Below, one piece after another: positions 1-51,868 of a stretch of 64,000 bases of DNA (its first letter is position 1; the number at the start of each line of letters is the position of its first letter). The stretch comes from Bugula neritina (lineage: Eukaryota > Animalia > Bryozoa): contig OZ037770.1 in the NCBI GenBank assembly GCA_964035545.1, forward strand, positions 12,762,642 to 12,826,641. The letters run 5' to 3'. The notes beneath the pieces are model-generated. The model saw only the letters and a list, made by a program, of their open reading frames with translations. It did not search any database and was not told the DNA's origin. Both the position numbers and the translations under genes were made by a program.

Positions 1-1189
1 AGAGTAAATTTATGCTAATGAATGTAACACAAAGAGCTGAATGCTAACAGCTGGAAATAAATAGAAAAGTTTTCTGGGTTTTTTATTAAATTATCTAAAT
101 GTGTTTATTATTTGAGCACAATTGTTACAATTGCAATAAATATGTAGCCTGTTCGCAAACTATTTGCTACCGTATTCCTAAATTTATGTGCTTCTTTTTA
201 CGGGTCTCTAAATAATTTCATTGACTTGTAGGAATTCCATGTAAAGAAATGCTTTTAAAGCATATATACCTATTGTGTTTGGCATTTTTAGATTGGAATA
301 TATTGTTTGATATTACAAATTTAATATATTTCTTTTAATATATATCTTCATAATATTTTTAGTAAAAATATTATATAGTAGGGCAGCCTTATATTTTTTT
401 TCATAGTATTGGTTTGTAAGTATGTGAACATGCTAACACAGATGAGCTAGTGCCTTCATAATCTACAGGCATGTGTTCCAACCCATAACTTGGATCTATT
501 AGATTTTAGTAAGACAGAGCTGACTATTGTAGCTACACGCAATAACCAGGGCTGCGTTGTACACTATGGGTATGTTAGTATTCTAAGAGTTGAAAGGTTA
601 ACAGCTCTAACTAGAGTGGACAGCCAGCAATACAAAAGATTAGTGGGATTTATATGTCAGCTGCCAGCTTCAGCATTGCTCCATAACCACAACTACAAAA
701 ATGGTTTAAATTTTTTTTTAAGTTATCAAGAAAAAGACTTTTTTAGATTTCTGAAACTGCTAATATGAGTGCTTGTGCCAAAATACTTTTCACAGAAAAA
801 ATGAAACTCATGCTAGCAATAGTCTTCACACAAACCTCAAATTTTACTGATTTTATGTCAATTCTCTCCATCATGGAGACTCTTCCTTGTGCCTTGTGAG
901 AGGAGACAACTTAAAATTATAAATGCCCCTGAAAGGATATGTGAAAAAAGTCTATTGCTTTTAGTGAATTGCTGTGAGTCTCCTTGTAGAATAATATTTA
1001 GTGGCAATAATTTAGGATCAATACGAGATCATTGGTTGACCAAATGACGTAGGTGTAGTAATGGAGAAAGTGGGAAAAGCTAGTGTTCTAGATTAATAGC
1101 TAATAGTATTCCTACCATTGTCAAATAACTTTATTCTAAATTCCTGTAGACATAATTACACAATTAGATTCCAACAGGCTGCATGTTTT

Positions 1190-1345
1190 AGTATATATAA
1201 AAAGAAGACATTTAAAAGGTGGTTTTTCCACTCTAATTCATATACATGTGTAAAATAATTTTATCTGTTGTGCCTTTGAGGGCCACATAAATGTAGGCTG
1301 GAGGCTACATCCGGCCCTGGCACCAACTGTTGGAAAGCCCTAGTC
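1190..1345. mobile_element. Fragment of a non-autonomous DNA transposon (hAT-like), related to 17877-18172
   Basis: Shares tttt(c)cactct..ttcatat..tgcctttgaggg..cataaatgtag.ctgg with 18070-18170 and ends in ttggaaagccct, a TIR-like end. Confidence 0.5.
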
Positions 1346-2607
1346 TGATCTAATGTTTTTGCATATCAAATTTTGTCTTGTATACACTATGCTTCCATTA
1401 ATTATTACATGATGCGAATGGATTTTTTCATTCGCCCTATTATGAAAATAGTTGCATCGAAGCAAAACCGCAGCCGGAAATTTAATCAAATAGCTCCTTC
1501 CAGTTATAGTTACAATTCAATGGCTCCTTTGATGAAAAATTTCTTACGCATTTTTTGATTGATATAGTAACTGGTCCTTTCATTAAATCAAATGAAACCT
1601 TTTGTGGCGGAGGCAGTGACCAGCGATTGTGTCTGCTAGTTACACAGATATTCGATGTAAACAATAATTACATACATGTTACATGCTAAAGTGCATTTCG
1701 TCTCATAACAACTTAAGTTATTTAATTGATTTTAGCTGCTATTATTTAAGATAGTTACCAACCATCTTAAATTTATAAAACTTTTCTACAAACCAAAGCA
1801 TTCCCAAGCTAAAAATAAATTGACAGCTATTTTCATTTTGAAAACATAAATTACTCTTAAGCTTTAGGCTACCAGTGGTTACACAATACTTTATTCCTTT
1901 ATTGGTTTGTGCTTTTTAATTTAAAACAAATTAATTCACATGCAGTGTGTGTATTTAATAAATTTAATCTAGCGAAAATGGGGGCAGAAGAGGTAAATGA
2001 GTTGTCATTAGGCATGAACACTGACTCAAAGTTGGCCATATTAATTTACATTTTAAGTTAGCCGCCACAATTTCAAGAAGAAAAAAATAACTTTGTACAG
2101 ATTGCATAGGAACGTGTGGTTTTCCTTCAATGTAATCCGTATGGGCATTCGTACAGATTCATTCGCCAGTATGGAAGCGCAGTGATTAGGTTCATACCAG
2201 TTTTGATTTCCCATGTCGCAGTGACTGATTTTGTGGTTAGTGTTACCACATACTAGGTATTGTGTAGGGTGAGTAGCATGAGTGTGTTGAGCTTCAAATA
2301 TAGTGAGAAGTAGCAGATATTTACTAATATAATGGTTGGATGATATAAAATTGTGGGGCTTGACTTGCTGAATAACCAACCTGAACCTACTAATTACTAT
2401 AAACTTCAGTATATTCCATGCTTCATTTTATGAAGATAAGCCACATTATATCCAAAATGTTTTTTTATATATTGATTATAGGAGAACTTTCTAAAACACT
2501 AATTTTCTATAGAAAATGGTTTTAGTAAAGAAAATTATCTAGTTGATATTTTAAAATGTCGTGATTGTAGTTGTCTGGTATGACATATATTCTGGTAATG
2601 CAGTATA

Positions 2608-4696
2608 ATGAGCATTGTTTACAGTTTGGAAACTCTGCTCAACTTGAGAAAACTGGATCTTACCTGGGGGATGTTTGGTCAGATTCCTGATTCAGTATAT
2701 GCCATGGAAAGCTTGGAAACCCTTGAACTTGCAGGCTGCCGGGGTCTTACACATATAAGTCCCAAAATTCTCCAGCTTACTAAGTTGCAAAGTCTCAACT
2801 TAGAGTATTGCTCAAGTGTGACGGTTCCACCATATGAGATTCTTAAACAAGGATTAAACGCAATCAAACAGTATTTCATAGACTTGAAAATGGGAGCTGG
2901 AAACAACCTCCCACTTGTTACAATTGCGGTTATTGGCAACACCATGGCTGGAAAAACTAGTCTCATTCAAACCTTGCAAAGTACCAGCAGAACCAGAATA
3001 TTAACCAATCGTAATCTTGGAAACAGAATTGATGAAACTACAAAAATCTTCAAAGTGGAAAAGTTGGAAATTGAAAAGGTTTTGCTACAGCTTATTGATA
3101 TGGGCGGGAATGAAATCTACCACACTACATACCAACTCGCTCTGCATCAAAATTGCATCCCTTTAATTGTTGCCAACCTGGTGCAATACAATGATCTGGT
3201 ACAAAAATCATCTGAAAGAGAGGCTGTCCGTAGACTCGCCTTCGATTATATGTCACACCTCTATCTTGCAAACCCTTCTATGGGCTCACCAAAACTTGTC
3301 CTCACACACAAAGATCTCTTTAGTGATGCAAAGTTTGCTGAATTGAAACACAGTTTTTTAAGCACTTGTAATCAGTTATGTAAAGAAACTGTTGAAGAGG
3401 AAAAGCAGTTGAAGGGCAGTTTCTCTCTCATTGAGCGATTTTCAGATTCAACTGAGGATATTTTTCTTCCCGAAGATGTTTTTGAGATTGGTGTCAAAGA
3501 AAGTTATGCTTATTTTGATTCATTGAAAATGAACCTTTTTTTCACATGTCAGCTGTTTATTGAAATTCTGCCAGCATTTTGGGAACAAGTTAGTCAAAAG
3601 GTTTGTTCTCTACCCTTGGCATACAACACTTTTGATGACCTTTTCAATTATTTAAAGCAGAGTTTCCAGTCAATTGAGCAAGCACAGTTTCAAATAATTC
3701 TCAACTATATGCACCAATGTGGGAAGATATTGTGGTACAAGAGCAGTAAAGGCCTTGAGGACTACATTTTTCACAATATTTCAGCATTGACAGATCTATT
3801 GGCAGTGTTTTACAGCCACGAAGGAAACAGATGGAGACAACGGCAAAGGAATTTTGTTCCTTTTCTAGACGAAGGCGGGATGAGAATAGAACGTGAAAGA
3901 TTTGATGAATTTGTCCAAGTTTTCAATAGCACTGCTGTTATGAATAAACAACTTTTCTTTTACCTGATAAAAAGTGAAACGTTGTTCAAAAGCAAAAATG
4001 ATTTGCTTGTTGCAATGAATGTTTTGAAAGCATTTCGTCTAATCCATGGTCCAGTTCCCTGTGGTGTCACCAGTACAGGATTTTTCATTCCTTACATGGT
4101 AGAGAAATTTTGTGATCGGGACGTTTTGTCAAAAGAAGAACTAAGCTTGCGAGTAGACCTAGTTTTCAAAGGTTTATCTCTACCACAATATGCTTATCAT
4201 CAGATGAGTGTAGGAATGCTAGAGTTTTTTCCTAGCTTGATTGCTTCACCAATGGTGCACAAGGATGGTGCAAGTGTTTTTCATGATGGTTTGGTTGTTC
4301 AACTAATCCATGACTACAAGTCAAGGAAAATTTCCATCTATGTGGCTTCCGCTGCAAGAAGAGTTTGTGAAATGTGGAAGCAGCTCTTTAAAATCACGAA
4401 TAATGCCCTTCAACACGTCACCCACTCATGGCCTGCAAGCCGGCCAGTTGTAACCAGTTTTTGTGCTCATTGTTTGTTGATACAACATCCAAATCCTGAA
4501 AAGATAGTTAATCCTCAATGGGCTGTCATTCCTAAAAAAGAAAGTTCACCTCATACTTCAGCAATCAACATGCCTTTGTCAAATACTCTTGAACCAGAAA
4601 GATCAAGATACTCATCTGCGATGTTACATGATCCCTCTGCACAGTGTAGATGCAAAAGAGAAACCGTTTTTGCTGTGTTTAAACATCCTTGCGCAT
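2608..4696 (+). CDS. Large exon encoding LRRs, Roc GTPase and COR (Roco family, MFHAS1/LRRK-type module)
   Basis: 701-aa ORF in the track with P-loop GNTMAGKTS, DMGG and THKD. A strong donor T|gtaagt at 4697 precedes the ORF stop. A candidate acceptor tttacag ends at 2623, suggesting further upstream LRR exons. Confidence 0.92.
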
Positions 4697-7600
4697 GTAA
4701 GTTTTATTGGTAGTGATATGAATCAAAACATGTCTATATGTCAACTTTAAACTACATGTTGTTGTAATTAAGTCTTGTGTCTGATTATTGATTATCCTCC
4801 CGCTCAACTTGAGTCATCTGATCAGTGTTTTAGACATTGTGACATTTTAGTCATGGGATTTAAAGTTGATTGTTTAAAGATTTAAAACAATATCTGAGTC
4901 AACTTTGCTAGTTCACTCGACCAATTATTGGCTCTAAATTTTTTAATTCTGCAGACTAGCTTACTTTCAAATTTAATCTACAGTGTGCATATAATAAAAC
5001 TAAAAATTCAAGTTACAATCTTCCCTAATGTGTTGATTCCCAATAATTTTATTGGGTTATTTATTGTAGCCAATTCCCTGCAACCCAGTGAATCTGAGAA
5101 ATTCACTGAGTTTGTGAAACAGCTGAAATCTCGGGGAGAACAAGCCAATGTTGGTAAGAAACTTCTTTGTGAAACTTGAAATTGATAAACTCCTTTTAGA
5201 AAAAACAACATTAAATTATCAACTACATTTTACATAATTTATTTCTTATTAGACTTTAAATGAAAGATTCAAAATTACAAGTCAATTGTTGAGAAAATTG
5301 TTAATAACTATTTTGATATTTTTTATTAGGCCAACAGTGAGCAATTTTCTTGAAACTTGTGATAATATGTTTGAAAAATTTTTGAAACATTTATTCTTTG
5401 GTCCCAGTTTTCAAACTTTTTGTTTGCAAATTATTATATAGAGATGACCAGACAGGCGGATCTCAGATCAACTGTTGCCATGGAAACCCCAGATGAACTC
5501 GGTGATCTCTCAGAAGATGATGACAACATTGTTCCAGAACAAGATGGAAGACGTCAGAGGGTCCAGATTCGACTTACAGTAACACCTACCACTCATCCCA
5601 AAGTGCAGGAGCTCTTTAATAATACCGAAAAGGTGACTTTGCAAGGCTTGAACTAATTAGAGTTGGCCTAAATCATTTTTAAACACTTTTCATTAAAAAA
5701 TTAAATTAGAAAATAGCAAATAACAACAAAAGCACCAGATTCTTCTCGATCTGTCAGCAATTTTTCAGGTCTCCTTCTAGCAAATTCTTTAAACTTTTAA
5801 CCTGTAATTATGAAAACATTAAGATATATATTTTTAATTTTTTACTATGTTGGTTCTAGAACTTGTGCGAACTGTGGCATTTTGTACAAAAATAAGTTAC
5901 AGTAGTTTCATTGAACATCACATTCTTTGTTAAATGGTTTCATTCCTGTAGTATGATATGCAGTACTTCAATTTGTTAACTTTTGTTTTAAATAAGGTAT
6001 ACAATATGACAAAGAAAAGAGGCAGAGCATTGATAATCAACAATGAAAACTTTCTTGAAAGACCTGACCTTCAGCGGAAAGGGTCAAATGCTGATGTTGT
6101 CAATATGTTGGACATGATGAAAGCTTTCAAATTTGAAGTTTTGATCCAACAAGATCTTAAAGCAGAGGTAGCATAATCAAAATGTGTTACTCGTGTGTTC
6201 TTTAATCATTGTAGGCAAATATCAAAGCTTTTTTTTAACAATTTATGCTCTTCAATGAATAAATGTCTATAAAGAGATAGAAAGTTTATCCCAACTAATT
6301 TTAACTTTTAGCTGACCAAATAGTAATATTATTTTTATTGCAGTATGGGTTTTTTTAATAGTTACTCTAGTGTTTATGCATTTTATAATCTGACATTTTA
6401 TATTTATACAAATTATACAAGAGTTAGATAATTTTGCGCTCGAATCTGTTTGCCTACATCTGCCATCTGTGCCTATATCTGCCATCTGTGCCTATATCTG
6501 CCTACATTTTTGATTACAGGATATGCTGAAAGCTATCAAGGCTGAAGTGGAGAACCAGGTGCATGAAGACTATGGGTGTCACATGTTAGTCATCATGAGT
6601 CATGGGAGTAGGAATAACCAGATCCATGGCACTGATATGAAGGCTATTGACCTTGCAAATGTGTTTGACCTTCTCTCTCCTCTCAACTTTCCTGGAATGT
6701 CTGGTAAACCTAAGATGGTGGTGTTGGAAGTGTGCAGTGGAGGTAAAAACTTATCTGTTGTATACAAATCTAGAGCAGGCTGCTTATAGACTCAAACCTA
6801 GTTACTTTGGTAGTATATGCTATTGAAAATTGTTTTTACTCGCTGGTTTGTAATTCTTGCAACTTCAGTATACACGTTTTTGTATATTTTACTCAAATAA
6901 AGAGGCTTAAAATAATTAATTGGGGGCAGGGGTTTAGGTATAACAATTAAGCTTTATTCTGTAAGAAATTGACCACCAGCAAGGCGAAATCTATTTCACC
7001 CATAATGAATATTCGATCATAAAAGTCGCCAATGCATATTGTTGTTGAAAACCCATGAGCCTAACCTATGCATTTCAAACTTACTTCAAGAATTTCATAT
7101 CACTCAGAAATATTTTTAGATTTCCTGTTGGCTTTTTAGAAGATCACATAATCATTTTATTAATTTTTGTAGCTTTGTTTCTCATATAACAATACTACAT
7201 TTGATGAAAATTTCAAAACTATTTTGCATTATTCATTTTTATCCTCATCACATTCATTGAAATTTTGGCTTATTATTTTATACTATAGCTTTATTATTCA
7301 TACTTTAATAAACGTTTTACTTACTCATATAAAATTAGTTCCCCATTTGCAATGAATATCTCGCCGGGGAGAAGTGCTGAATAATTTTTGAAACAGACGA
7401 TGCCTAGCTGACTTGGTTTATTTTGCTAGACTGTTTAACATATTTGATTGGTCACTTTGTCACATTTTTTTATAAGCTAATTTATTTACGAATGAATCCG
7501 GGGTATCAAATTGAGTTTGATGTATATAATATGTATTTTAGTTCGATCAGATCTTGGTGAACAAGGGGTTGTAACAGATATGCAATTTAAATCTGTTTCT

Positions 7601-7777
7601 GGCGAGCAAGCTGAGTATGAGGTAGTGCCTGCTCTACCCTCAAAAGTTGGTCACCGACAACTAGAAGCTGAGTCTAAAACTAGACTAAACTCTGATGACT
7701 TGATTGTAATTAAGTCTAGCTTTGAAAGTGAGTTATTTGCAAAATATCTGTATCATAGTTTCAACTTCAACACCCAT

Positions 7778-7855
<78 letters not shown>

Positions 7856-8110
7856 AGGAAAAGAGCAATTTAATTATATAGATGTTGTTTTATTGTACTA
7901 CTAATAGTTTCATGCCTCTTCGGCACTCCTCAGGCACAATATTTGTGCCTGAGGAGTGCCGAAGAGGCATGAAACTATTAGTAGTACAATAAAACAACAT
8001 CTATATAATTAAATTGCTCTTTTCCTCAATAATATAATTGCTCATTATTATACACATAATAATTTGAGCACTTTTTTATCGCTGTTTTTTTAAAAATCTC
8101 ACGATACAAT

Positions 8111-8209
<99 letters not shown>

Positions 8210-8487
8210 GTATCAATCTGTGGACAGCAGCTGTTTCGAGATTTGTCCCCTCATCAGCACAGAGCAGAGTACCATGGCCCACACCTTCGCAATAGTAGAA
8301 ACTTATAGTTTTACTAAAGCATATTTAAAAGGTGTGTAAACCCAAGCCAGAATGCTCAAGTGACTCTAGGGGTCACCTAGGAGTCACGAGCATTGCTAAA
8401 TGCTAGCAGCTTGAGTTTGTGACCATGGTGAGAGAGCTCAATCATTTAATGTCATTGCTGAGCATTAAATGAGAGCGTAATATCTCA

Positions 8488-8564
<77 letters not shown>

Positions 8565-9220
8565 GAATTTATATAAATATTTAGAACATATATAATACAA
8601 TACTGAGTTGTGATGAACATGGATGTGTATTTTGTAGGTTTCCTGGCAGTAAGACATGATGTTTACGGTTCCCTAATGATCAGAGCTCTTGTGTCCACCA
8701 TGTATAAACATGCCGGCCATCATCCCATGTGTAAAATCTTCAAAAACGTAAGTTTCTTGAAAGCATTGTGCTACTAGATAACTTTGCCATTTGTATGGAT
8801 AAATTTTGTGTGATAATAAAAAAATTATGCAAAAGGTGGGGTTTGAACCCATGCTGCACCAACTCAATATTCAGATGGTCTGTCTTTATGCCAAAACTAA
8901 CCTGACAATTGTAGTACACAACATTATATAGAGCAATGCATCCAGTTAAATTCTTAACTAATAATCAGACAGATGGGAAACTTTATATGTGTTTTTTTAT
9001 CAAATCATTAGAATTACTTGTGAGTCATTCCCCCACACTATAAGATACAGTGCACTAAACATATTGTATATTATTATTTTAGGTTCAGCAGAAGGTTAGA
9101 AAAACTTGTCTGGCGAAAAAATTGCATCAAGGACAGATGGTAGTGACATACGACACCCTGACTCATGGGAGACAACTCTATCTCTTTCCTGGATTTAATG
9201 GAGGTAGACGGAGAGAGTGA
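2608..9220 (+). CDS. LRR-Roc-COR (Roco GTPase)-caspase (peptidase C14A) fusion protein; 8 coding exons, ~1063 aa from the ATG at 2608; 5' end may extend upstream
   Basis: Exons 2608(or acceptor 2624)-4696, 5070-5153, 5442-5632, 5997-6167, 6520-6742, 7542-7727, 8638-8747, 9083-9220. All introns are GT-AG with compatible phases; total 3192 nt, open to TGA. Roco motifs: LRRs (LRKLDLTW, LETLELAGC, LQSLNLEYC), LRR-Roc linker PPYEILKQGLNAIKQYF, G1 GNTMAGKTSL, G3 DMGG, G4 THKD, COR motif ILNYMHQCGKILWY. Caspase motifs: YNMTKKRGRALIINNENF, RKGSNAD, MSHG, KPKMVVLEVCSG, small subunit AVRHDVYGSLMIRAL and TLTHGRQLYLFPG. Confidence 0.85.
5997..9220 (+). CDS. Caspase catalytic domain exons (large subunit, linker, small subunit)
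   Basis: Catalytic His (MSHG) and Cys (EVCSG) are present, as are both S1-pocket Arg equivalents (LQRKGS, LAVRH). The C-terminus LYLFPG resembles caspase-2-like sequences. Confidence 0.92.
7893..7939 (-). ncRNA. Minimal type I hammerhead ribozyme motif (mirror copy in the left arm of the inverted repeat)
   Basis: Exact reverse-complement copy of 7943-7989. Confidence 0.8.
7943..7989 (+). ncRNA. Minimal type I hammerhead ribozyme motif (sense to the host pre-mRNA)
   Basis: Stem I TTGTGC/GTACAA; core CTGAGGA (CUGANGA); stem II GTGCC-GAAGA-GGCAT; GAAA; short stem III ACT-ATT-AGT; cleavage triplet GUA, cutting after 7983. Confidence 0.8.
8206..8490 (-). mobile_element. ~285-bp hammerhead-bearing element between (TA)n tracts; Penelope-like pLTR fragment or retrozyme-like
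   Basis: Bounded by (TA)n on both sides. Contains the hammerhead plus two further hairpins (~8351-8394 aatgctc..gtgactc..ggagtcac.gagcatt; ~8435-8476 tcatttaatg..cattaaatga). The family assignment is inference. Confidence 0.55.
8217..8263 (-). ncRNA. Second, distinct minimal type I hammerhead ribozyme motif
   Basis: The minus strand reads TCTGTG CTGATGA GGGG-ACAAA-TCTC GAAA CAG-CTG-CTGTC CACAGA: stem I TCTGTG/CACAGA, canonical CUGAUGA...GAAA core, stem III ACAG/CTGT, GUC cleavage triplet. Confidence 0.8.
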
Positions 9221-11648: not shown

Positions 11649-14600
11649 ATGGCATGTAAGTAGACATATTTGATACTTGCTTCAGGTCTGTGGGTTACAC
11701 TGTTCTATGATATACACAACAGCTTTCTCGGTCAACTCTAATCACATTTACTGCTACCGATTACGGATTACTTTATATTATTTATTTATTAATAATTATA
11801 TTCATGCTAATTAAATTTTTATAATTTTAAAATAATAATTAATTAATGATTCAATTGTTATTTTGTTATAAAACTGTTGTAGTTTTCATCCTTTTTGATT
11901 CAAAGACTGAGACAACTTTCTTTCTGTTTCATAACAAATTTAATGTTTTGCAAGTCTAAGCCAATATGAACCATCTGACAGGCTGCCATATGCCATTCGA
12001 CTCATTTTCTATTTGTGGTGACGCGAAGCTTTTATTATACTTGATCTCAATTACTTTGACCACTATCCAATTTTTCATAAATGTTGCTGTATTTTTAACC
12101 TGAAGCGGATTCTCTCAATTTCTCTCGCTACCGATCCAGTGTGTCAGTCTGTATAATTTTTAATTCACTTCAATAGCCAAAAGTCAATGCAATGGATGCC
12201 AGGGGCCTGGGTATGCCACCCCAATCGAAGCCATGGCTACAGCGCCTAGGGAGAAGTTAGTCTACTTGCCTTGCATACAAATCAAGGCAGGGAAAAGAGA
12301 CTATTTGGCAACAGTCAACATTGACCCATCCAGCACCGAGTATTGCAAGGTTTGAAAGTATTTATATTCTTCTATTTATATCTGTTGCAGAAATCATTGT
12401 TTGCTATAGAGTTCAATGCAATAGTTTTATAGCTATGGAAACTTGAGTTGCAGATTTGTTAGATGAAAAGCCTCTTTTTTCAAGAATAACTCTTGCTAAA
12501 GACCTTCTCCCCCTGAACTCCATGTTACTGTGAGCATTACTTAACAATCTATTGTAGTATACATTTAGGAGTACCTGCTTATGGACTGGTGTTTGTAGGT
12601 TATACACAGACTTCCTATGCTGCATGATAATGATGAGTTACATCACTCTGGGTGGAACACTTGTGCCAGTTGCTATGGTAACCCAGCTGCTAAGAGAGAC
12701 AAACTGATTCTCCCCTGTATTGGATCCAGTAGAATCTATATCATTGATGTCTCCACTCCACGCAGTCCTCGCATACATGCTGTAAGCTCTTATCCTCATG
12801 TGTTTAGTTTACTTGGTCTCCTGGCAACACAGTGCAGCACCAAATATTACGCCTAATCGTAGAGGTCTTCTGCTAATTTGCCAATTTTATATCTTTGGAG
12901 AGATTCACCTGGTCTAGCCAAAGTCACAAAAATGTGTACATCAGAAATATCAATACCATTTCAATAGAGAGCAAATTCATCATTTAAATGCATCATGTAA
13001 ATGATATTTGATTATTATTTGCTTTGTATATATTTTTGTCTTTATACTCTTTTGGATTGCAGTATTTTGTACACCACTGCACATTACGGTGGTTGGAATT
13101 GATATAGTCCACGTCTTCTTATGCAGAAATTGGTTGGTGTCCTGACATTGTTTATATAACTTGATTTTAAATTAAACATTGACTCAACACACATTTTTTT
13201 GGCAAGTTTTGTAACTTGAAACACTCCTAGTTGCCATGGTTACAACAATGGCTGCTATAAACAGAATAGGATCAGAGTTAGGAATAGAGCAGCAGAGTGT
13301 CTGGTTTTATGGCTGCTTCTAAACTCTCCGTATAAACTAGCTTTAAATTCTCAAAATTTTGCACGTCATGACATCTAAGGTTTAGAAGTAGTGAGTAGAA
13401 AAATTGCGATGAAGTAGATATATTGATTGGAATCAATCAGTAATCAAGGCATGAGCAGCTCTGTAATGTAAAATATTTGAGCAAAAGTGCTATATAATAC
13501 AATGTGATGTAACATATACTCAGAGTTGTATCATAACCATTCAAGTCAATAAGTCCTTCCAAGTCATATCAATGGTACTTTGATTTGACTTTGCAATACT
13601 TGATCAAGTCAATATAATATATGATGCTCATATAAATAATTACCTAAAATTTATAGAAGTTGCATGGTTGTTTCTTATTTGGCTGCAGAAATATGAAGAT
13701 TAAAATTGTAGCTTGCACTCTATTTCTTTTATCTATGCTGGAAAATTGTTATTAAAATTGAAATAACTAGTTCAGTCACTGACTACAATAACTGGGACAG
13801 CGGCTTAAGTTATGTTAGTAGTTCATTGCTAAAATACCTTGCTATCAAAACTAAATCCTTAAAAGTTTATCTAACCACTTGGTTATACATGCTGAAAAGT
13901 AAGCAGTTAGTCAATTTGTGACTTGTATTCAATTTTCTAAAATATGCATCAAAAAGTACAGATTTGTCAAGTTGGTTGTGCAAATTAACTCAAATATAAT
14001 CTGTAGTTTTAGTGAGTTTTTCAATTTCTCAAGTTAACAAGTGACGTAGTTTGTGCCCAGCTATTATATTATATTACTATATTATATTACAATATAATGT
14101 AATGTAACATAACGTATTAATAATATATTATACTGTAGCATAACATATAATTATATAATATCATATAACATAACATGAATATAATATAATGTAAAATAAC
14201 ATATAATTATATATGATAATGTAACATACACTGTGTGTGGTCCACTCAGGTGATTGAGCCGTCTGAGATGAAAGCGCTGGGAGTAACCAGACCACACACA
14301 GCTCACTGCATGGCTGACGGCGACGTGTTGATTAGCACAATGGCTGATGAAAATGATCAGAATAAAGGTATGTAACTGTCTCACTCTTTGGATTGGGAGG
14401 TTAAATGTGACCCATATAAATTATTTTATCATTCCTTTTGCAAAAACTTTTTAAAAGGAGTTAGAAATGATCTTTGGACCTAAGGGTATAAAGCAGTTGC
14501 TAGGGTCTAGATTTGTATGAAACCTAAGGCACATATCACAGTGTTAGTGTCCCTGTTAGCCATCCTTATGTTTTGAGTCAACAATTTCATGTAGTCTACT

Positions 14601-25000: not shown

Positions 25001-28000
25001 TGAGTGTATTCTAAGCCGAGAGTTTTAAGAAACTGAGTTGACTGACAGGTTATGATCACAGGCTTCTTAGCCTCTAGTCCTATGATCCGAATACTATCAT
25101 AGAAACCCTTGTCTTCCTCAAATATAATATCAGCCTGAAGAGAGGAATAATTCACAGGCTACAGCACTGACAGGGTGAGTCAACTATCAGTAGCCCCTCA
25201 CAGACTTATGGTTCACAGTCTATACCGCTATAAAAAAGTCGTGGCTTAAACACTAAAATTGAATATAGATGAAGGAAATGCATTAGAAAAATTGAGTTAG
25301 TGAATATGAAAAAATAATCAAAGGAAGCATAACTCTCTAATAAAGAAATTATTAAAGCACTACTAATAAAATTTTATGTAATATATTAGTAAAGTAATAG
25401 TGGTATTTAAATTACAGTTTAACACACTTATCTATAAAATAGCAACACCTAATTTGTGATATAACAAGCAGAGCATACGACATGTAAAGCTGAGCAGGTC
25501 ATGTGATAGGCTGTTTGGAGGTCATGTGATCAGTTGAGACAAATGTTACAAGTTTCCTCCAATCAAACAGGCTAAGATACCAAAATTATTTTACAAAGTG
25601 CATTGGCCTGGCATAGGGGAAACTCAGTTTACCTCGTCAAAAAGAATGAGGGAGAGTTTAGAAAGAGACACTGATTGGTCAGTTTTCTCAGAATCAGCTG
25701 TTTTCTGGTGACCACTGTTAGAGTTGTCTTCTTTCCGACTTTCATCTACACAAGTATAAACACATGCAAGTGATTCCATGGCAATGAACACTACACTTGG
25801 TAAAACCAGTTGAGCCGACAGAAAGAAAAGAAAATTAAATTAAATTAAATCAAATTAAATTAATATGTAGTGAACCTTGCACTCCACACACAAACATTTT
25901 TTTACAAAAAATTCAGGAATAGTCATGTTTATCAAAGTATTGTTAAGTGATTGTACTTGTCTTCACATTAGTATAGGATGCTTAACAAACTATTCTTATA
26001 GTTGAATAACAAAATTATAATTAGAAGTCGAAAGAAATTAGCTTGATGTAACAACTGCGTTGTGTTCAATAGTAAATCTTATACCTGCCGGCGAACTTGC
26101 CTTCCCGGAGTTCTGTTTGTCAACTTTGCTTTCCTTTAGTCTCGTGAAAAAGGAAGCGATGTTACCTGAAGGTTTTCTTTCTGCTGTAAGCATATAGATC
26201 AATATATAGTATATTATAGTATAGTATATATAGTATAGTATATATAGTGTAATATAGTATAGTATAATATAGTATAATATAGTGTAGTATAGTATAGTGT
26301 AGTGTAGTATAGTATAGTATATACGGTATAGTGTAGTATAGTATAGAACAATATATTATAAAATAGTATAGTATAAGTTGATGGAATATAGAATAGCTTA
26401 GTATAGACTAGCATAGCATAGCAGTTATATTAGTGTATGCTATTCTATTTTAGGCAAACTATTCAATAATGTGTTGATCTATTCTATGCTAGTACAGCCA
26501 GGTGTGTCTACACATTGTACATACAGAGAGACGTATATATCATGTAGATAGCTAGATATACATTGAATATCACAGAAGTAAGTTTACAGAGTACGCTTTA
26601 GTTTACTTAAATTGACCAAATAAAATGGTATCCAGCTAGTAGCTATTGAACAGACAACTCCGGCATTACCTTGCCCCACTCTGGCGAACATCCTTTCTAT
26701 AGATATCCCCTTGCCCTTCTGAACTTGCTGCGACCTGGTTGACTCGTGAACTCTCTCCATCACGTTCTTTGTGGTGCGTAACATCGCCGGGTTTATCTCA
26801 AACACCTGCAGAGTCAACAGGTATATTAGTGTTATTATTCAATCTACAGTGTGTTTACTGGGAAAGGATATTAGAAAAATATTGCCTCCCCATGTTTAAA
26901 CTTGGGTAACTTGAGGACAAAAACAACTATAAAGACTTAGTGTGTTTAAATAACTAGTGAAATTAAAATTTTATTGCATGAATATAATAAAACACAGTAT
27001 AATCGAGTAGGGATGATATTGCATGAGCCCACTGTATAATATACCTTATAACCAAGTAGAGATGCTATTGTATGAGCACACTGTATAATATACCGTATAA
27101 CCAAGTAGAGATGCTATTGTATGGGCACACGTCGTCTTTCCCAGACCAGAACCGCCGCTGATAACCAGAACAGGTGTCTGAGTCAATTCAGCGTCACTGT
27201 CACCACTCTCAACGTCTGCTAACAGAAATGACAACAATCTTACAGCTGAGTGAGAGAAACATGGGGTGACAATTCCTGGTCATCAGCCAATTAGAAGAGT
27301 GCAGTTGAGTCATCAGGAAATCATAGAAATAGCCAATTAGAACAATCAGATTGATAGAAATCATAGAACACTTGTCACCACACGTCAAAAATACTTCACG
27401 CAGACACAGTTTGCAAATCTGACCTTGGCTTTGCTCATGCTTCCGCTTGACCTTCTTTTTCTTCTGTTTCCTGTTGACGAGGGGTTGACCTTTGACAAGG
27501 TCACGCTTCCAGTTGAGCAGCCACTCGTTGACCACCTCCACGCAGCCCTTGTTGACCAGCAGCTGCATGAAGGAGGTGGGAGAGTATTTGTGGGTCCACA
27601 ACTGATCCTCCACGTCTGACGCAGCTACCCGCGAATCTGTGGGTTAAAAGAAAATAAAAATGGCTGCCTTGATCTTGAAAAAAATAATTCCAACTGAGTA
27701 ACTGGAAAAAGGTGCAAATAGTTTCTGGTTTACAACATTCTACTAGCATTAGTTAAGAGAGGGGGTGGGCAGTGAAGAAAGAGAGTATAACTCTTCAACA
27801 ATAAAGGTGGCAAGTACTAGGGAAATGGGTACATTAACCTTGTTTGAGATACAGCGGCAAAATGATAAAGAAAACTAGAAATAAAAACAAATGAAGGGAT
27901 AAATAATGCCTTGTAGGCACGGCAATACTTTTGCTCCATGATGTTTATACGATTTCTCAGTACAGATTGCAAGGTGTTTATTTTTACGAAGTAGTAATTT

Positions 28001-31000
28001 AGAAAAAATATTTGAAACTAACTGCTTTTTTGTTAAAGCTGACTATTAAGTAAGCAAACAAAATTTTATCAAGAGATGAAACTAATTAGTAAAGCAAACA
28101 TTTGAAATCTCGAATTTGCAAAATAGACTTAAAAATCGTTATTTTCTCAGCTTCAAGTCTTGAAAGTTTAAATGGAATCGCCCAAACACTATCACATGTA
28201 TTGCAATATTATTAGGAAATCTTTGTAAGAGATAGTGTGTGTTTCACATAGCTCAATATAACTCACCAAGACTATTGTAAATATCCTGAACAGGGTAGTG
28301 GGGCAAGAGAGAAGATAACTTCTTAATCTCTCTTTTGATTTTACTGTTAGTGAGGGTATCTCTCTTCACCTGTAATTTGCAGCCACATGAGTTTGTCAGG
28401 AAAGTTTAAAATCACATCCAACGATGGCTGTTAAAAATTTCCTAAGCAAAAGCTGAACATAATATTTCATTGCTGCAACTCACAGTAGATAAAAAGGCCT
28501 CACTAATAATAGATACACTTACCTTCAAAGGTTGACGTGGTCTGTACGCAGGTATGTCCAGTGCTAATCTGTCGTACTTACTTTGTACCTGGTCAGTGCT
28601 GGCAGGTAACAATGGTAGAGTACAGGTGTACTCTTCACTTACCTGTAAGTGTATACAGAGGTATGGTTCACGGAGATAATTAAATATGACTCAGCATACC
28701 ACAATAGATTAGAACATACAAAATACTTTAGGCACTTGCAAAGTTAAATAAAATACATTTTAAATGCAATTCTGACCAAATATTTCTCACGAGTTGTGAA
28801 AATCTGTAAACGCAAGATTAGAAAAACAAGTAGAATTGTTGTTACATGAGCACATTGTATAATTATGCATGTGAGAGCCATACAACTTATTAAGAAGCTT
28901 ACAACACATTACAATGAATAGATATGCCATAACTTGTTGCCAAGTTAAACTAATAGCATTATTAGTTTATATAAATATATCAACTAACATTAGGGAGTTG
29001 TGTCACATGTCCAATACGTGGAAACAGTTCAGCCTGTGTCAAAGGTTTAGCCTTAGAAACCTGTCTAAGGTTGGCATCATCATCAGGGGCGGACATGGCA
29101 TGCAACTTCCTAAGTCTCTCTGTACGCAACATGGAATTAGGGCTATCCACTGCAAAGCAATGAGCTAGTTCTATAACAGGAGATACAATTGAAAAGATAA
29201 ATAATACGTCACATTACGCTGTAGTTGATCAAATTGTATTTATTTCAAGTATTAAGTCTGTCTGTCTGTCAAGAGGTGAGGAGAGAGGAAATCAATATGC
29301 TTAAAGAAGACAACTCCCACAGTAGTTGTGAATGCATGTTATTACACAGCTGGGAGTTAATATTCAATGAACTTATAAATACAAAAGAGTTTTGTAACTA
29401 AAAGGAAGTAATGAAAAAAGCTATAGGCTACATTTCATAATGTACTTTCACTATCCTACATGATCTATAACTAACATAATCACGCACATGGTTGACTATT
29501 TTACATTCAATGAACAAACATAAATTATAGAGAGTGACTGACCTTGAGTTATGACTATGACATCACCATCGTCTTTCTCACTAGACACGCCTACTTTTTG
29601 CTTCTTTCTTTTAGTAGGCGTGGTCTTAGTTCTTGGTCGCTTCACTCTTCTAGAAGTATCTGCAGAAGACTGAGTGTTTTAAAACATGAACAAAGTAAAC
29701 TTTTCATGACAATGCTGAGTGAATTTACACTGTTTCAAAGCTCAAGCGTTGAACAATTTAGTTGAATATTAAACTTTCATATTTATTTGGCTAAATGGCA
29801 AGACTCATACCATTTATTCTATAGATTTGCTTAACATGTAGTAAAACTATTTCCATAACTTAATTGGCGAGCAAAAAAGAACTAATTCCATCTTATAGAG
29901 AAATAATATACCACAACAAGTATTTAGAAGAGAGGGCAATTCCAAAAATGCGTATTTTCTCTGTATTAGCCAGTATGTAGCAACTAGCTAGGCCCGCTAG
30001 GTTATAAGACTACTGAGCTAACTAGCTAGCTCTTTGTCTGTCAGCTCACCTGGTGGTTCCTCATCAGCAGAAGACAACTCTACTTCTATCACAACAGGAC
30101 GTAACCTCTGACCTCTTTTGCCTTCAGACAACTCAGTGACTTTTTGCTGTTTAGACTTGCCTGTATTATTCAGAGCACCTACAGTTACTGCGGGCGTTGA
30201 ACCCCCCTCCGGAGACTCGCTATCTGCAGATAGGAACTCAGACGTGTCACTAGAAACTGCAGTAGAATGTTTCTGTTTCAACCGACTCCTCACTTGTCTT
30301 AAGGAATGCCTAGATGTAGTGCCGTGTGCATCAGTTTGAGATGACTGCCGGGTAATGTCACATAATTGACTGTCAGAGTATTTCTTAGAATCACAGTCTA
30401 GCTTATCACCTGTTTCCTCCTTTAGATTAGTGGTCTGCCGAGTTCTCCGTCTAGACTTTCTGGAGTCAGATTGTAGTTGAGCACCATGCTCCTTTTGTGC
30501 AGCAGAATCACTCGAGGTATTTTGGTCTATATTTTGTTTCGCTTGTTTCAACCTGATTTTATCCCGCACCTCTCTCAAAGAGCGACGTGTAGAAGGGAAT
30601 GCGCCCTCTATTTTGTCCGCTGATGAGCACTTTTCTTCACTCGATGAAATTTTCTCTTCAGAAACAAAACTGCTCTGAACAGGGTGAGCTGCACATTCCA
30701 CTACACAGGTATTGTGAGTATCCGGTGATGCAGTGTTTACAGCTTCTGAAGGAGGAGTTTTTTCCGGTGTGCATATTTTCTTGATCTCTTCAGATTTTAT
30801 ATCCAGAGTCTCTGCGCTATTGAGTGACGTCAGGGAAGCAGATGTATCAGTGTCACGTGCAGCTTCTGTTTGTTTGATTGGTTTGTTGCTAGTGGAGAAT
30901 GTGAAATAACGCGCCAAGGGGGATTCTGATACTACTACAAAAACAATTTAAAAAATAAGCTATCAATTGAAAATATACAGATCCAAAGTATCACGAAAAT

Positions 31001-33404: not shown

Positions 33405-34380
33405 GTGATACTTGTCGATACCTGTCGATGTTATTTCCACACTGGACCTCCCTAGAGGGAAGAAGGGGTGTGCCTCATATAAAAAACTAAGTTGTCAGTA
33501 TTTGGACAGTAATCTAAAAAGTGTTAACATTCTTGTGCAGATTAACTTAACAGGCTAACTAGCCTGTCTGTGTGTGATCAGTGCTGATCCTCATATCTCT
33601 TATTGTTCTTGGGAGAAAACTATAAAGATACCCATTCTTGTTTGCTCTCACTGATCTGGGAAATCCTGCAACCTGAGACCGAGTCTGTACAGTGCTTGTG
33701 GTCCGCTGATCTAGAAAATCATCATAGGCAGCACTTAGAGTTGGATGTAGTTCTTCCTTAGACAATATTTTTAGGAGAAGGCTGATGCGTCGGTTTTTCC
33801 TTCTTAAATCAAGCGGCTCCAAACATAGCTTTTTCATCTCCTCCCCAATATCAGTTCTTCCTTTGCTGCTAGAGATAAAACGCACAGCATCTGTTTGAAC
33901 ATTCTCCATTATACTTATATGATTTTTGCTAGATGGGTCCCAGGCTGCACTGGCATATTCCAAGTGTGGGAGACAGAGGGCTTTGTAGGCAATAAGCTTT
34001 GCTCTCTTGGGGGCCCAGTAGAGTGCACGTTTTATCATACCTAACTGCCGTTTTGCAACAAGAACCTTTTTTAGGATGTGTTGGTCAAATTTACAGTCTG
34101 ACTGCAGTATTACACCAAGGTATTTGGTTGAGTCAACATGATCCAACACTGATCCACTGAGCTTGTATCGGGGAGTGTCGGTCTTAGGGTTAAAGCTGAT
34201 TATCTTGCTCTTGGAGATGTTAAATGACATTCCCCACTTATTTGCCCAAGTACTAAGAGAGTCCAGGTTGCGCTGAAATCCCTTACAGTCTTCAGATGAG
34301 GAAATTTCTTGGTAAACAAGTGTGTCATCGGCAAAAAGAGCACAAGAGCAGTTGAGACACTTAGGAAGGTCATTTATAAA
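33405..34380 (-). mobile_element. 5'-truncated non-LTR retrotransposon (LINE, CR1/L2-like) reverse transcriptase C-terminal part and 3' UTR
   Basis: Open frame from ~34380: FINDLP..ALFADDTLVY..LSTWANKWGMSFNISK..KYLGV..YKALCLPHLEYASAAWDP..FLPRTIRD, stop at 33559; short tandem tail gatac(t/c)tgtc near 33410-33430. Confidence 0.9.
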
Positions 34381-39700: not shown

Positions 39701-42145
39701 CAGAGTTATGCCATGATATTTTACCTGGTTTTTTTGTATGAAAACAATTAAAATTTGTGAATTTTATATCTCAAATGTTCTGCTTTCTGTTATTTTTAAC
39801 GGTAAAATATTTTATTCTGTTTATTATATATACACCAGTTAGTTGTCACGGTGGTTGTTTGTACAGTATGTCATTCATCAAGCTGTTATACTCAAACTTT
39901 TCCTTATTTGATGTCAAAAATTCTTAGAGGTGATTTTGCTCATTAGGAACATTATAACATAATTTAAAAATTAAATTCATTGATTCATTAGCCATAATAT
40001 CTGTATGACCTGTGTATGACCTCTGTATGAACTTTAGCCTGTTGGCCTTCAACTGGTGCCCCCTAAAACTCACTCTATGGGACTGCGCGACATGGCCATT
40101 GTCGGAGAGACAAACTTTGAGGAAACAACGCTACGTGCACGTCAGGTCTGTTTCTATTGGCCACCGAGCAACCTGCTCAACTTGCTCAACCCTTAGACAG
40201 TTACTGCCTTTCCATTACTTCGAGTTTTGCTAATAGATGTTCATATTGTGAAATTTTGGTTACGGTATCATTTGATGCTACTGTTTCCAAACTTGATGAA
40301 AATTCCATTTGGATGATGCTTAGTGTGCAAATGCAGTGAGTACAGTGTGTTCAATGCTTCTCTTGTGTACGTACAGACCTCCACAGTTGATATTGCCGGC
40401 ACCAGCTACCATGTTGCTCAGCTGCCCTCTGCAATCTCCGTCTCAGAAACTCCTGTGTATGAGTCAGCTTCACCCATGAATGTCGCTCCAGAAGTTAAGG
40501 AAACCCCACAACCTAGAAGGGTAGAGTATTATAGTATAGTGTAGTCTAGTATAGTGTAGTATATAGTATAGTATAGTATAGTGTAGTATAGTATACAGTA
40601 TAGTATAGTACAGTATATTATAGTTTAGTATATACAGTATAATATAGTATATATTATAGTATAGTATAGTGTATTATAGTATAGTACAGTATATTATAAT
40701 TTAGTATATACAGTATAATATAGTATAGTATATATTATAGTATAGTGTATTATAGTATATAGTATATATTATAGTATAGTATTGGATGGTATGGTCTTGT
40801 ATAGTAGAGTAAGGTAGTAGTCCTCTAGGTGATATTTATACATATTAAACAGTATTATATACATATTGAAAAGTATTTTATACATATTGAAGGTATTATA
40901 TACATATTAAAGATATTTTATACATAATAAAGGTGTCACTACCAAATCAAACGATGCCGGAATCTAACAAGCTGTTCCAGGATGTGCTGAATAAGGTTAT
41001 CGAGGACACAAAGATCACAGAACCTTTCTACATGAGACATATATTTGCTAATGACGACACCCCGGACCATGTGAGTCGGAAATTCTACTTCCTGTCGGCC
41101 ATGTTTGCCGGAAATATAATAGATAAATTATTTATAGTACTTTTACATGAGGCTTTTTGAAGCTATTTTAATTTGATGATAAAGCGAGGTTCAACTAAAA
41201 TGTGTGTAACTGTTGACTGGAACAAGAAGTTGTGCTCCCCTGGCTTCCCTTAGTTTCTGTTAGTAACATTATTGTGTTTGTAGGGCTGTAAATCACACCA
41301 TCAACCCAGGTTATGTAACATTTCTGAATTTTTAGCATTGCTTGTGATTGAAGAAATCTTTAGGATTGTCACCGATTTTTCTTTTTCAATCAATAATGGC
41401 TAAAAAAGGTCAAGTTTTCCATGGAAGCTTCTCAAAATTGACAGAATATAAGTTTATTTTATTATGTTCCAAAAATAAAACTAACAAATTTTGGAATGAG
41501 GGACAGGTTTGGTGTTTCTGTTTTAACTTTATGTGCTGTAAATTTTTTTATCAGTTCAAAACAATCAACGTGTTAGAAAGTGCATCAAGTCCATAAGGGA
41601 AGTTTTTTGCATGTCTTAGTCCTTACTTGTAGAACTTAGGCTAATTATATATCCTTGACCTTTGATTATAGGTGTTGATTGTTCCTAAAAGCATGGTTTC
41701 CACAACTGAGCCCAGCGACGAGTTAGATCAGTCAACTAAACTAGGTCAGTCGACTAATTTAGACGATTCCTTCGAGATGAAAGCTGCGTCACCAACATGT
41801 CCGCCAGGTTATCGCAAGTCTGTCCAGGTAAACCCCAAGCAACGGTTTTCAATCTCTGACAACATCCGGCACATGTCCGAGGATATCTCTTATCTGGACA
41901 AGGAGTATTCGAGGCAGCTGCGGAGGCTGACTCACGCCGGCGTAAAGGCGAACCCGGAAAAGGAGAACACCAAAGAGCTGCGCCGTCTAACTCACGCAGG
42001 CGACAAGATGTGTCTAGACAGAGAGTACGCTAGACAGCTGAGACGGCTCACTCGAGAGTTCCGCAAGTTTAGCGATCTGATTGGTGATGACTCGGATGAA
42101 GATAATTTGCCTCGGAATGAGCGTGCTATGTCGGTTTTGGAATAA
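36790..42145 (+). CDS. Uncharacterised protein, 8 predicted exons, with C-terminal R-[QE]-LRRLT repeats
   Basis: Phase-compatible GT-AG exons ~36790-36903, 37453-37706, 38339-38503, 39559-39669, 40038-40145, 40378-40520, 40933-41070, 41672-42145; exons are GC-richer than introns. No domain recognised and the start codon is tentative. Confidence 0.7.
38112..38315 (+). mobile_element. tRNA-derived SINE copy
   Basis: B box ggttcgaaccc; core ggtgatgttaggaagagcatccagtcataattgctcctgtg. Confidence 0.85.
40527..40930. repeat. (TAGTA)n microsatellite followed by a ~21-bp minisatellite (tattttatacatattgaaag)
   Basis: Directly visible within an intron. Confidence 0.88.
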
Positions 42146-51211: not shown

Positions 51212-51868
51212 ATGCTGATGTCAGAATCGTTACTTCTACTTAGTGCGGCCATTGTCGCAATGGCATTAGCCAATCCTGTTCCACATGCCCACCGCCACGG
51301 GCACCAGTCCCGTCACAGTGACTCTTCCAACAACACAAACACGAGTAACACAAACCTAATCAAAGAACTGAATCTTATGATTCCCCAGCAGTATCAGTCA
51401 ATCTACGTGCTATTCGCTGACAGGAAGCCGGAGTCGCCTCCCCCTTGGTATCAGGTCACTAGCGGAGTAATAAACAGAAGTAGGCGGAGCTCTGGTGACA
51501 CGAGCAGCCACGCCCACATCCCACAGTCAGTATGTGATAGTCGGAAACGTTGGGTGATGAAGGAAACAGCAATAGACACAAACGGCGCTAATGTAACTGT
51601 CGTTCAGCGAATTAGCGTTAACGGGATGAGGATTAACCAATATTTCTACGAAACAACTTGTCTTCAAGAAAACTGTCAGTGTAGAGGTATTGATACTAAT
51701 CGTTACTCATCTAAGTGTGAAAATAAATATATTTGGGCGTATGCCAAAGTAAGAGACAATCATGGAACCGTAGCTTGGAATCTAATAAAGTTAGGGGGCT
51801 CATGCGGATGCTCCATAACGGAATTGACAATCGATCCCGATCAAAGTATATGGGACGATTTGAGGTAG
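51212..51868 (+). CDS. Neurotrophin (NGF/BDNF family) prepro-protein, single coding exon, 218 aa
   Basis: Hydrophobic signal peptide, furin site RSRR, and an NGF-domain pattern SVCDS..WV..TAID..G..VTV..QYFYETTC..CRGID..YSSKC....AYA..VAW.LI....CGC. An acceptor tttgtag sits 3 nt before the ATG. Confidence 0.95.
   Translation: MLMSESLLLLSAAIVAMALANPVPHAHRHGHQSRHSDSSNNTNTSNTNLIKELNLMIPQQYQSIYVLFADRKPESPPPWYQVTSGVINRSRRSSGDTSSHAHIPQSVCDSRKRWVMKETAIDTNGANVTVVQRISVNGMRINQYFYETTCLQENCQCRGIDTNRYSSKCENKYIWAYAKVRDNHGTVAWNLIKLGGSCGCSITELTIDPDQSIWDDLR

Follow-up and report, generated by a model that had tools for sequence, protein, structure and literature searches.

A spliced bryozoan gene predicted to join a leucine-rich repeat arm, an LRRK2-like Roc-COR module and a caspase in one protein

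The stretch of DNA analysed here (64,000 nucleotides of the bryozoan Bugula neritina, contig OZ037770.1 of assembly GCA_964035545.1, positions 12,762,642 to 12,826,641 of the forward strand; hereafter the window) contains the 3′ part of a real, spliced gene that combines a leucine-rich repeat (LRR) arm, a Roc-COR module resembling that of LRRK2 and a caspase in one protein. The gene structure is confirmed with high confidence from position 2625 onward, and its sequence relatives identify the locus as one member of an expanded LRR-Roc-COR-caspase gene family in Bugula and Watersipora. Pfam, fold and database searches were run with single exons or database proteins as input, and the joined frame was compared by local scripts (translation, local alignments, substitution-rate ratios and a tree). 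Paralog loci are given by L numbers, among them L003, from a public B. neritina assembly.

Gene structure and splicing

Eight segments of the window (2608-4696, 5070-5153, 5442-5632, 5997-6167, 6520-6742, 7542-7727, 8638-8747 and 9083-9220, all on the plus strand; 3192 nt) join into a frame of 1063 codons that stays open up to its terminal stop. The seven introns are all of the GT..AG type and phase-matched (phases 1, 1, 0, 0, 1, 1 and 0), and their GC content is 0.23-0.31, compared with 0.36-0.46 in the exons. The rebuilt translation, splice sites and phases bear out the stop-free eight-exon frame given in a preliminary description of this DNA, except at its 5′ boundary. If unspliced, the big open reading frame (ORF) ends with the stop codon at 4711-4713. 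The donor that the description had placed just ahead of this stop (GTAAGT, 4697) is genuine and is kept in a paralog. Likewise as described there, the two linker exons that follow carry the open frame, phase-matched, into a complete caspase, with RNA-contig joints on both. The features are listed below; order and disorder in the linkers are predicted from a folded Watersipora relative, used as a surrogate.

2608..2624, plus strand: 3′ end of an intron, acceptor AG at 2623-2624; same offset in L002, L003, L006 and L007, with diverging letters upstream
2625..4696, plus strand: large exon (phase 2 to phase 1) with the last LRRs and their cap, Roc, COR-A, COR-B and a Cys/His-rich tail; from Pfam, AlphaFold2 and Foldseek, length equal in L003
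2935..2961, plus strand: P-loop of Roc (G1, GNTMAGKTS), followed by an intact G2 Thr, G3 DMGG and G4 THKD
4462..4473, plus strand: CxHC motif with two later Cys; alignment columns 613, 615, 616, 676 and 689 conserved in 66-69 of 70 sequences
5070..5153, plus strand: linker exon, 84 nt, one predicted helix (surrogate model); RNA joints on both sides, 84 nt also in L003 and Watersipora
5442..5632, plus strand: linker exon, 191 nt, with a conserved acidic DLSEDDD motif retained in bryozoan relatives; RNA joints
5997..6167, plus strand: first exon of the caspase large subunit, Arg179-equivalent at 6075-6077; Peptidase_C14 E 7e-8, alignment and RNA joints
6520..6742, plus strand: caspase large subunit, His at 6601-6603 and Cys at 6733-6735 within EVCSG (common to L003); Peptidase_C14 E 3.5e-10, aligns with CED-3 and caspase-2
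7542..7727, plus strand: intersubunit linker, then the beginning of the small subunit; reached by an RNA joint from 6740 to 7540, with a loose end at 7729 that matches exon 7; disordered in the surrogate model
8638..8747, plus strand: caspase small subunit, Arg341-equivalent at 8652-8654 by alignment; 110-nt exon, as in L003, Watersipora and amphioxus
9083..9220, plus strand: final coding exon with the stop; 87% identical in amino acids to L003, which has the same stop

RNA contigs of four runs from four studies (their kind, 'RNA', being a predicted label) were placed on 1790-7770, a stretch that ends ahead of intron 7. Contig depth tracks the exons, is about zero in introns and falls to almost nothing past the donor at 4697. 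Joints cross intron 1 (from 4688/4692 to 5068-5076) and introns 2, 3 and 4 in all four runs; the junctions for which the preliminary description had sought spanning transcripts (4696/5070, 5153/5442 and 5632/5997) are thereby covered in every run, by contigs of close relatives, and the case it had named as refuting the fusion, in which transcripts end after 4713 and the caspase has a separate start, is largely refuted. Intron 5 is crossed in two runs, and the loose end at 7729 reads into exon 7, the letters of exon 7 following directly on those of exon 6. In run X4, joints of equal depth (6.61) fit a single 618-nt contig that reaches from the COR exon into caspase exon 4. Most contigs are 85-95% alike to the window, closer in the caspase exons, and therefore come from close paralogs or another haplotype; what they prove is the splicing pattern of the family, or of close relatives.

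The ATG at 2608, previously taken as the start codon, was rejected. Paralog similarity, including that of L003, begins precisely at the acceptor TTTACAG ending at 2624, and in four of five paralog loci an AG acceptor is as far from the P-loop as it is in the window. Since this acceptor is conserved and the ATG, with the sequence upstream of it, is not, 2608-2624 is intronic and the 5′ end of the gene lies beyond the window. Upstream of the large exon, L003 has 141-nt phase-2 LRR cassette exons and Watersipora has cassettes of 138-153 nt, arrays that share the phase of the large exon's acceptor (phase 2). Such cassettes were seen, among the paralog loci, in L003 and L005 only, and none was found in window 1-2600. 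The protein is longer than first modelled, its LRR arm being predicted to come from upstream cassette exons. RNA depth at 1790-2189 was considered as a possible 5′ exon and ruled out, as 1575-2186 is a dispersed repeat of ~600 nt (78% alike to L001 7-604) with heavy RNA-contig coverage.

The Roc-COR and caspase domains

In exon-wise Pfam searches, the big exon matches Roc (29.9 bits, cut-off 27) and, weakly, LRR, COR-A and COR-B, with COR below the cut-off. Its AlphaFold2 model has a pLDDT of 89, and Foldseek aligns it over ~700 columns with LRRK1 (E 2e-22), the LRR-Roc-COR protein of C. tepidum (E 5e-19) and also LRRK2. As modelled, with Roc carrying G1-G4 and COR (A and B) directly after it, the protein is a Roco protein. 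Key residues of G1-G4 are conserved in 67-70 of 70 family sequences; the residue following G3 (G3+1) is Asn in the window copy and varies across the family. The NACHT or NB-ARC ATPase that defines STAND proteins is absent, the nucleotide switch being the Roc GTPase. The CxHC motif and the two further Cys constitute a candidate zinc site, which may bind zinc and cap COR, and the Pro-Cys of the family aligns, in the window copy, to HPC near the end of the large exon.

Peptidase_C14 matches fall in exons 4 and 5. In the alignment, the catalytic His and Cys and the equivalents of Arg179 and Arg341 are all intact and the small subunit aligns with its relatives; the large and small subunits with a His-Cys dyad are those of a C14A peptidase. 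The QACxG motif of this group, which includes Gln283 of the S1 pocket and is kept by most other family members, is not preserved, a point absent from the preliminary description: the window copy and L003, and these alone, read EVCSG (Gln283 to Glu and Ala284 to Val), other bryozoan members having QACSG, QACGG, QACRV or HACSG and amphioxus members QACRG. A sequencing error was ruled out, as EVCSG is shared with L003 and fits the RNA-contig ends. Arg179, Gln283 and Arg341 make up the Asp pocket of caspases, position 283 being Asp in para- and metacaspases (PMC2064784). Judged by the traits of these two groups (Asp at 283, Asp or Glu at 341 and no Arg179; PMC2064784), the bryozoan protein belongs to neither, as only position 283 is acidic and both Arg are present; Glu at 283 with both Arg kept is an intermediate state, and the site probably alters or lowers the preference for Asp.

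The linker between COR and caspase comprises ~90 residues and is modelled, in the surrogate, as a helix followed by an acidic segment without order and a second, short helix; its DLSEDDD motif is a candidate self-cleavage site. A death fold hidden in the linker was ruled out on the same model, which lacks a six-helix bundle, and no CARD, DED or death domain was found in the window part, the linker or the N-termini of full-length relatives. The earlier statement that the protein has none of these domains holds for the window part and for full-length relatives, the 5′ part of this copy lying outside the window; the CARD or DED prodomain of classical initiator caspases is missing from the linker and from those relatives.

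The bryozoan family and comparable systems

The closest named relatives are B. neritina proteins, with ~35 further single-exon matches. L003 has eight exons of exactly equal lengths and an open frame, and the pairwise ratio of non-synonymous to synonymous substitution rates (dN/dS) against it is 0.18 in Roc, 0.24 in COR-A, 0.16 in COR-B, 0.26 in the linker and 0.20 and 0.23 in the caspase subunits; for the LRR cap it is 0.72, and for the COR tail 0.93. The values of 0.16-0.26 show purifying selection on the GTPase and the catalytic residues. The caspase is 82-88% identical in amino acids, and a pseudogene was ruled out by the open frame and by dN/dS. The seven introns of Watersipora XP_067947674 agree in position and phase with those of the window gene, and further full-length fused models occur in B. 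neritina and Watersipora. The family layout consists of a large Roc-COR exon, linker exons of 84 and 173-191 nt, five caspase exons and upstream phase-2 LRR cassettes, and the intron positions are identical in the window, L003 and Watersipora. The closest paralog found, L007, is 87% identical in DNA over 2618-6060, introns included; at L007 2024-2043 two overlapping ORFs were called for its big exon, suggestive of a frameshift or of faulty assembly. A metagenome search for related loci with a single protein returned none.

The preliminary description knew of no characterised animal protein of this architecture, and uniqueness among animals did not hold: besides the two bryozoan genera, at least 12 Roco-caspase proteins are distributed over Branchiostoma floridae, B. 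belcheri, B. lanceolatum and two hybrids, with XP_002614028 of B. floridae (LRR, Roc, COR and C14) returned by a representative search. The amphioxus proteins agree with the bryozoan ones in domain order, in five caspase intron positions and their phases, in a phase-1 intron after the Roc-COR exon and in a 110-nt caspase exon, but have LRR-Roc-COR in one exon, no cassette array, a short linker and QACRG. An amphioxus 'LRRs-caspase' was proposed by Zhang et al. in 2008 as a direct link between pathogen recognition and apoptosis (PMC2575513); the paper does not mention Roc or a GTPase, and its models may be proteins of the XP_002614028 type. P0199 and P0202 of B. belcheri are Roco-caspase models that also carry a glycosyltransferase (PF00534, PF20706), P0202 having Death domains as well, and may be merged models; P0193 also has a Death domain. 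Another adaptor-free fusion, at L008 217-2967 of an ENA assembly (P0205), combines a pannexin-like (LRRC8-type) domain, LRRs and a QACRG caspase.

A Roc-COR tree was calculated from 46 rows after removal of 36 that were redundant, incomplete or poorly aligned. The tree is a quick one and its branches are long; in it, the bryozoan and the amphioxus sequences group apart, in starred clades, and a joint clade is borderline rejected (approximately unbiased test, p 0.045). The five intron positions shared by bryozoan and amphioxus caspases are compatible both with a single origin and with two fusions involving the same type of caspase. We take these positions to be those of caspase-2 and caspase-9, and this match suggests that a Roc-COR exon replaced a CARD exon at the phase-1 intron, once or twice. 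The likely two-chain forerunner is an LRR-Roc-COR protein ending in CARD, as found in Lingula (P0211, P0170) and other invertebrates, and a pathway from Roco to caspase therefore exists in two-chain form.

Beyond these, Kaur et al. (2021) list caspase among at least 24 effectors of bacterial conflict proteins with an LRR-AP-GTPase(Roc)-COR core (PMC8195603). Such proteins with exchanged effectors have been proposed to be bacterial immune systems (PMC8195603). They have the same order of LRR, Roc, COR and then effector, yet are prokaryotic and predicted, whereas the protease in bryozoans is of the animal caspase type and its gene has spliceosomal introns. The top Atlas feature match (0.86), a cyanobacterial COR-CHAT cluster, serves as a lead only. 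For the expanded LRR-ROCO family of brown algae, with LRRs from repeated and shuffled exons, an immune receptor role has been proposed (PMC3341825, PMC11378527); these proteins lack a caspase, a few having another peptidase domain (IPR009003). MFHAS1/MASL1, LRRK1/2 and the invertebrate LRR-Roc-COR proteins with CARD or Death share the LRR-Roc-COR fold, but as output they carry a kinase, a death-fold adaptor or nothing, in contrast to the protease itself in bryozoans; in databases, the proteins of bryozoans and amphioxus go by 'MFHAS1 homolog' or 'CASP8'. Apaf-1/caspase-9, the PIDDosome with caspase-2 and NLR inflammasomes likewise unite a repeat sensor, a nucleotide switch and a caspase, and initiator caspases resemble the bryozoan one in a non-Arg residue after the catalytic Cys and a long prodomain. 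These platforms differ in that the bryozoan protein is one chain, with a Ras-like GTPase in place of a STAND ATPase and no CARD, DED or death domain, and would be expected to form a dimer and not a wheel. Within a literature coverage outside which most subscription papers lie, we found nothing on the bryozoan family, no naming of an animal Roco-caspase and no experimental test of any Roco-caspase. The design belongs, as an uncharacterised variant, with the predicted LRR-Roco-effector receptors and is not unique to the locus.

Several other features were noted in the window. Intron 6 contains a perfect 94-bp inverted repeat with a 3-nt loop (7846-8036), flanked by (AT)n tracts; Hammerhead_1 weakly matches either arm (17 bits, gathering threshold 34, E 0.15; plus-strand match at 7943-7989), and pairing of the arms would mask this candidate ribozyme. 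Downstream of the gene lies an SBP56 (selenium-binding protein) exon (12617-12856, plus strand), where L003 has DNTTIP1, and the two loci are thus not syntenic. A single ORF at 51212-51868 (plus strand) encodes a neurotrophin-like precursor (Pfam NGF, E 7e-24) with a hydrophobic N-terminus and a basic cleavage-like site. On the minus strand, a 223-aa ORF at 33559-34230 resembles the end of a LINE-type reverse transcriptase (no Pfam match at E 0.01), and ORFs at 27209-30917 resemble, by eye, exons of an ATAD5/RFC-like clamp loader (no Pfam match). An exon at 41672-42145 (plus strand) has a weak FCH/F-BAR match under the cut-off.

A putative one-chain receptor and its alternatives

We lean, by a small measure, towards a one-chain receptor in which the LRRs would sense, Roc-COR would switch between monomer and dimer, and the dimer would activate the caspase by proximity. 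In the proposed model, the variable LRR arm would bind a cytosolic ligand, probably foreign or damage-derived, and binding would shift the nucleotide cycle of Roc-COR such that two chains dimerise through COR. The COR dimer would then bring two caspase domains into proximity, the role that a platform plays for caspase-2, -8 or -9, and the paired caspases would cut their own intersubunit linker, perhaps the acidic linker too, followed by death or inflammation substrates. The Roco protein of C. tepidum is a dimer when nucleotide-free or GDP-bound and a monomer with GTP (PMC5714945); by this analogy the resting form would be a GTP-bound monomer and the active form a GDP-bound or empty dimer, a polarity that is a guess. 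The preliminary description had called the module a GTP-gated dimeriser and, as the C. tepidum protein is monomeric with GTP, the gate may run the other way.

Several points weigh against this receptor. The roles of ligand, dimerisation, protease and cell death are all ones that we infer only, and expression of this exact copy is putative, given contigs mostly 85-95% alike. The link of this copy to an upstream LRR array is predicted from paralogs, the LRR-cap dN/dS of 0.72, a value from a single pair, is not evidence of positive selection, and the change from Gln283 to Glu introduces an acidic residue where para- and metacaspases have one (PMC2064784). The last point leads to a rather unlikely, though not far-fetched, alternative, in which the EVCSG subfamily would be a protease of low activity or not directed at Asp, that is, a cFLIP-like regulator or decoy that would pair with active QACSG paralogs through COR and tune them. 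The confinement of both substitutions to the window copy and L003, other bryozoan members differing, speaks for it. cFLIP lacks the catalytic Cys, unlike the window copy, which retains His, Cys and both Arg, with a caspase dN/dS of ~0.2 and 82-88% identity to L003, all of which speak against a decoy. A Glu beside Arg179 and Arg341 could nevertheless neutralise the S1 pocket, as reasoned from PMC2064784.

Other readings differ in what the protein would be for, in how it would be held in check or in whether it is one protein at all. The chain might act as a death or remodelling switch in colony biology (polypide regression, or contact between self and non-self colonies) and not in pathogen sensing. 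Bryozoan polypides regress cyclically, transcripts of close relatives occur in all four runs with no sign of a challenge being needed, and variable LRRs would suit both immunity and allorecognition; an expanded family with variable LRR cassettes, however, is what innate receptors typically show, and the same design in the solitary amphioxus is inexplicable by colony life, such that we judge this role improbable. It is very improbable that Roc-COR keeps the caspase off, with the COR dimer or the LRR arm separating the caspases until they are released by GTP-driven monomerisation or by a cut in the acidic linker. Initiator caspases generally lack activity as monomers, and a freed domain would still need a dimerising force, even if the linker is long and partly disordered, with a conserved Asp-rich motif, and the C. 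tepidum protein becomes monomeric upon GTP binding (PMC5714945). Scarcely credible is a pair of genes, in which a Roco of one exon would stop at 4713 and the caspase would be a gene of its own, as the reach of the big ORF to the stop at 4711-4713 and the two GenBank models for L003 might suggest: RNA joints span introns 1-3 in all four runs, depth drops after the donor, the linker exons keep their length and evolve under purifying selection, the GenBank break lies inside the caspase and not between Roco and caspase, and full-length fused models exist in B. neritina and Watersipora.

To our knowledge, characterised animal caspase platforms all rely on death-fold adaptors and are scaffolded by a STAND ATPase or a receptor. 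A functional Roc-COR-caspase would demonstrate that the job of the platform can be done in one chain by the dimer switch of a Ras-like GTPase, and would offer a simple enzymatic read-out for the question, debated for LRRK2, of which nucleotide state is dimeric and active; the EVCSG subfamily is a natural test of the contribution of Gln283 to caspase specificity. More tentatively, and less likely than not, dozens of bryozoan one-chain Roco-caspases with cassette-built LRR arms might be a main class of intracellular immune receptors in these animals, evolved separately from the amphioxus and bacterial forms, with protease sites (QACSG, EVCSG and others) diversified into different specificities or decoys that pair through COR. 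If true, this would be a GTPase-based alternative to the NLR inflammasome, in which a protease directly reads out the Roc-COR cycle.

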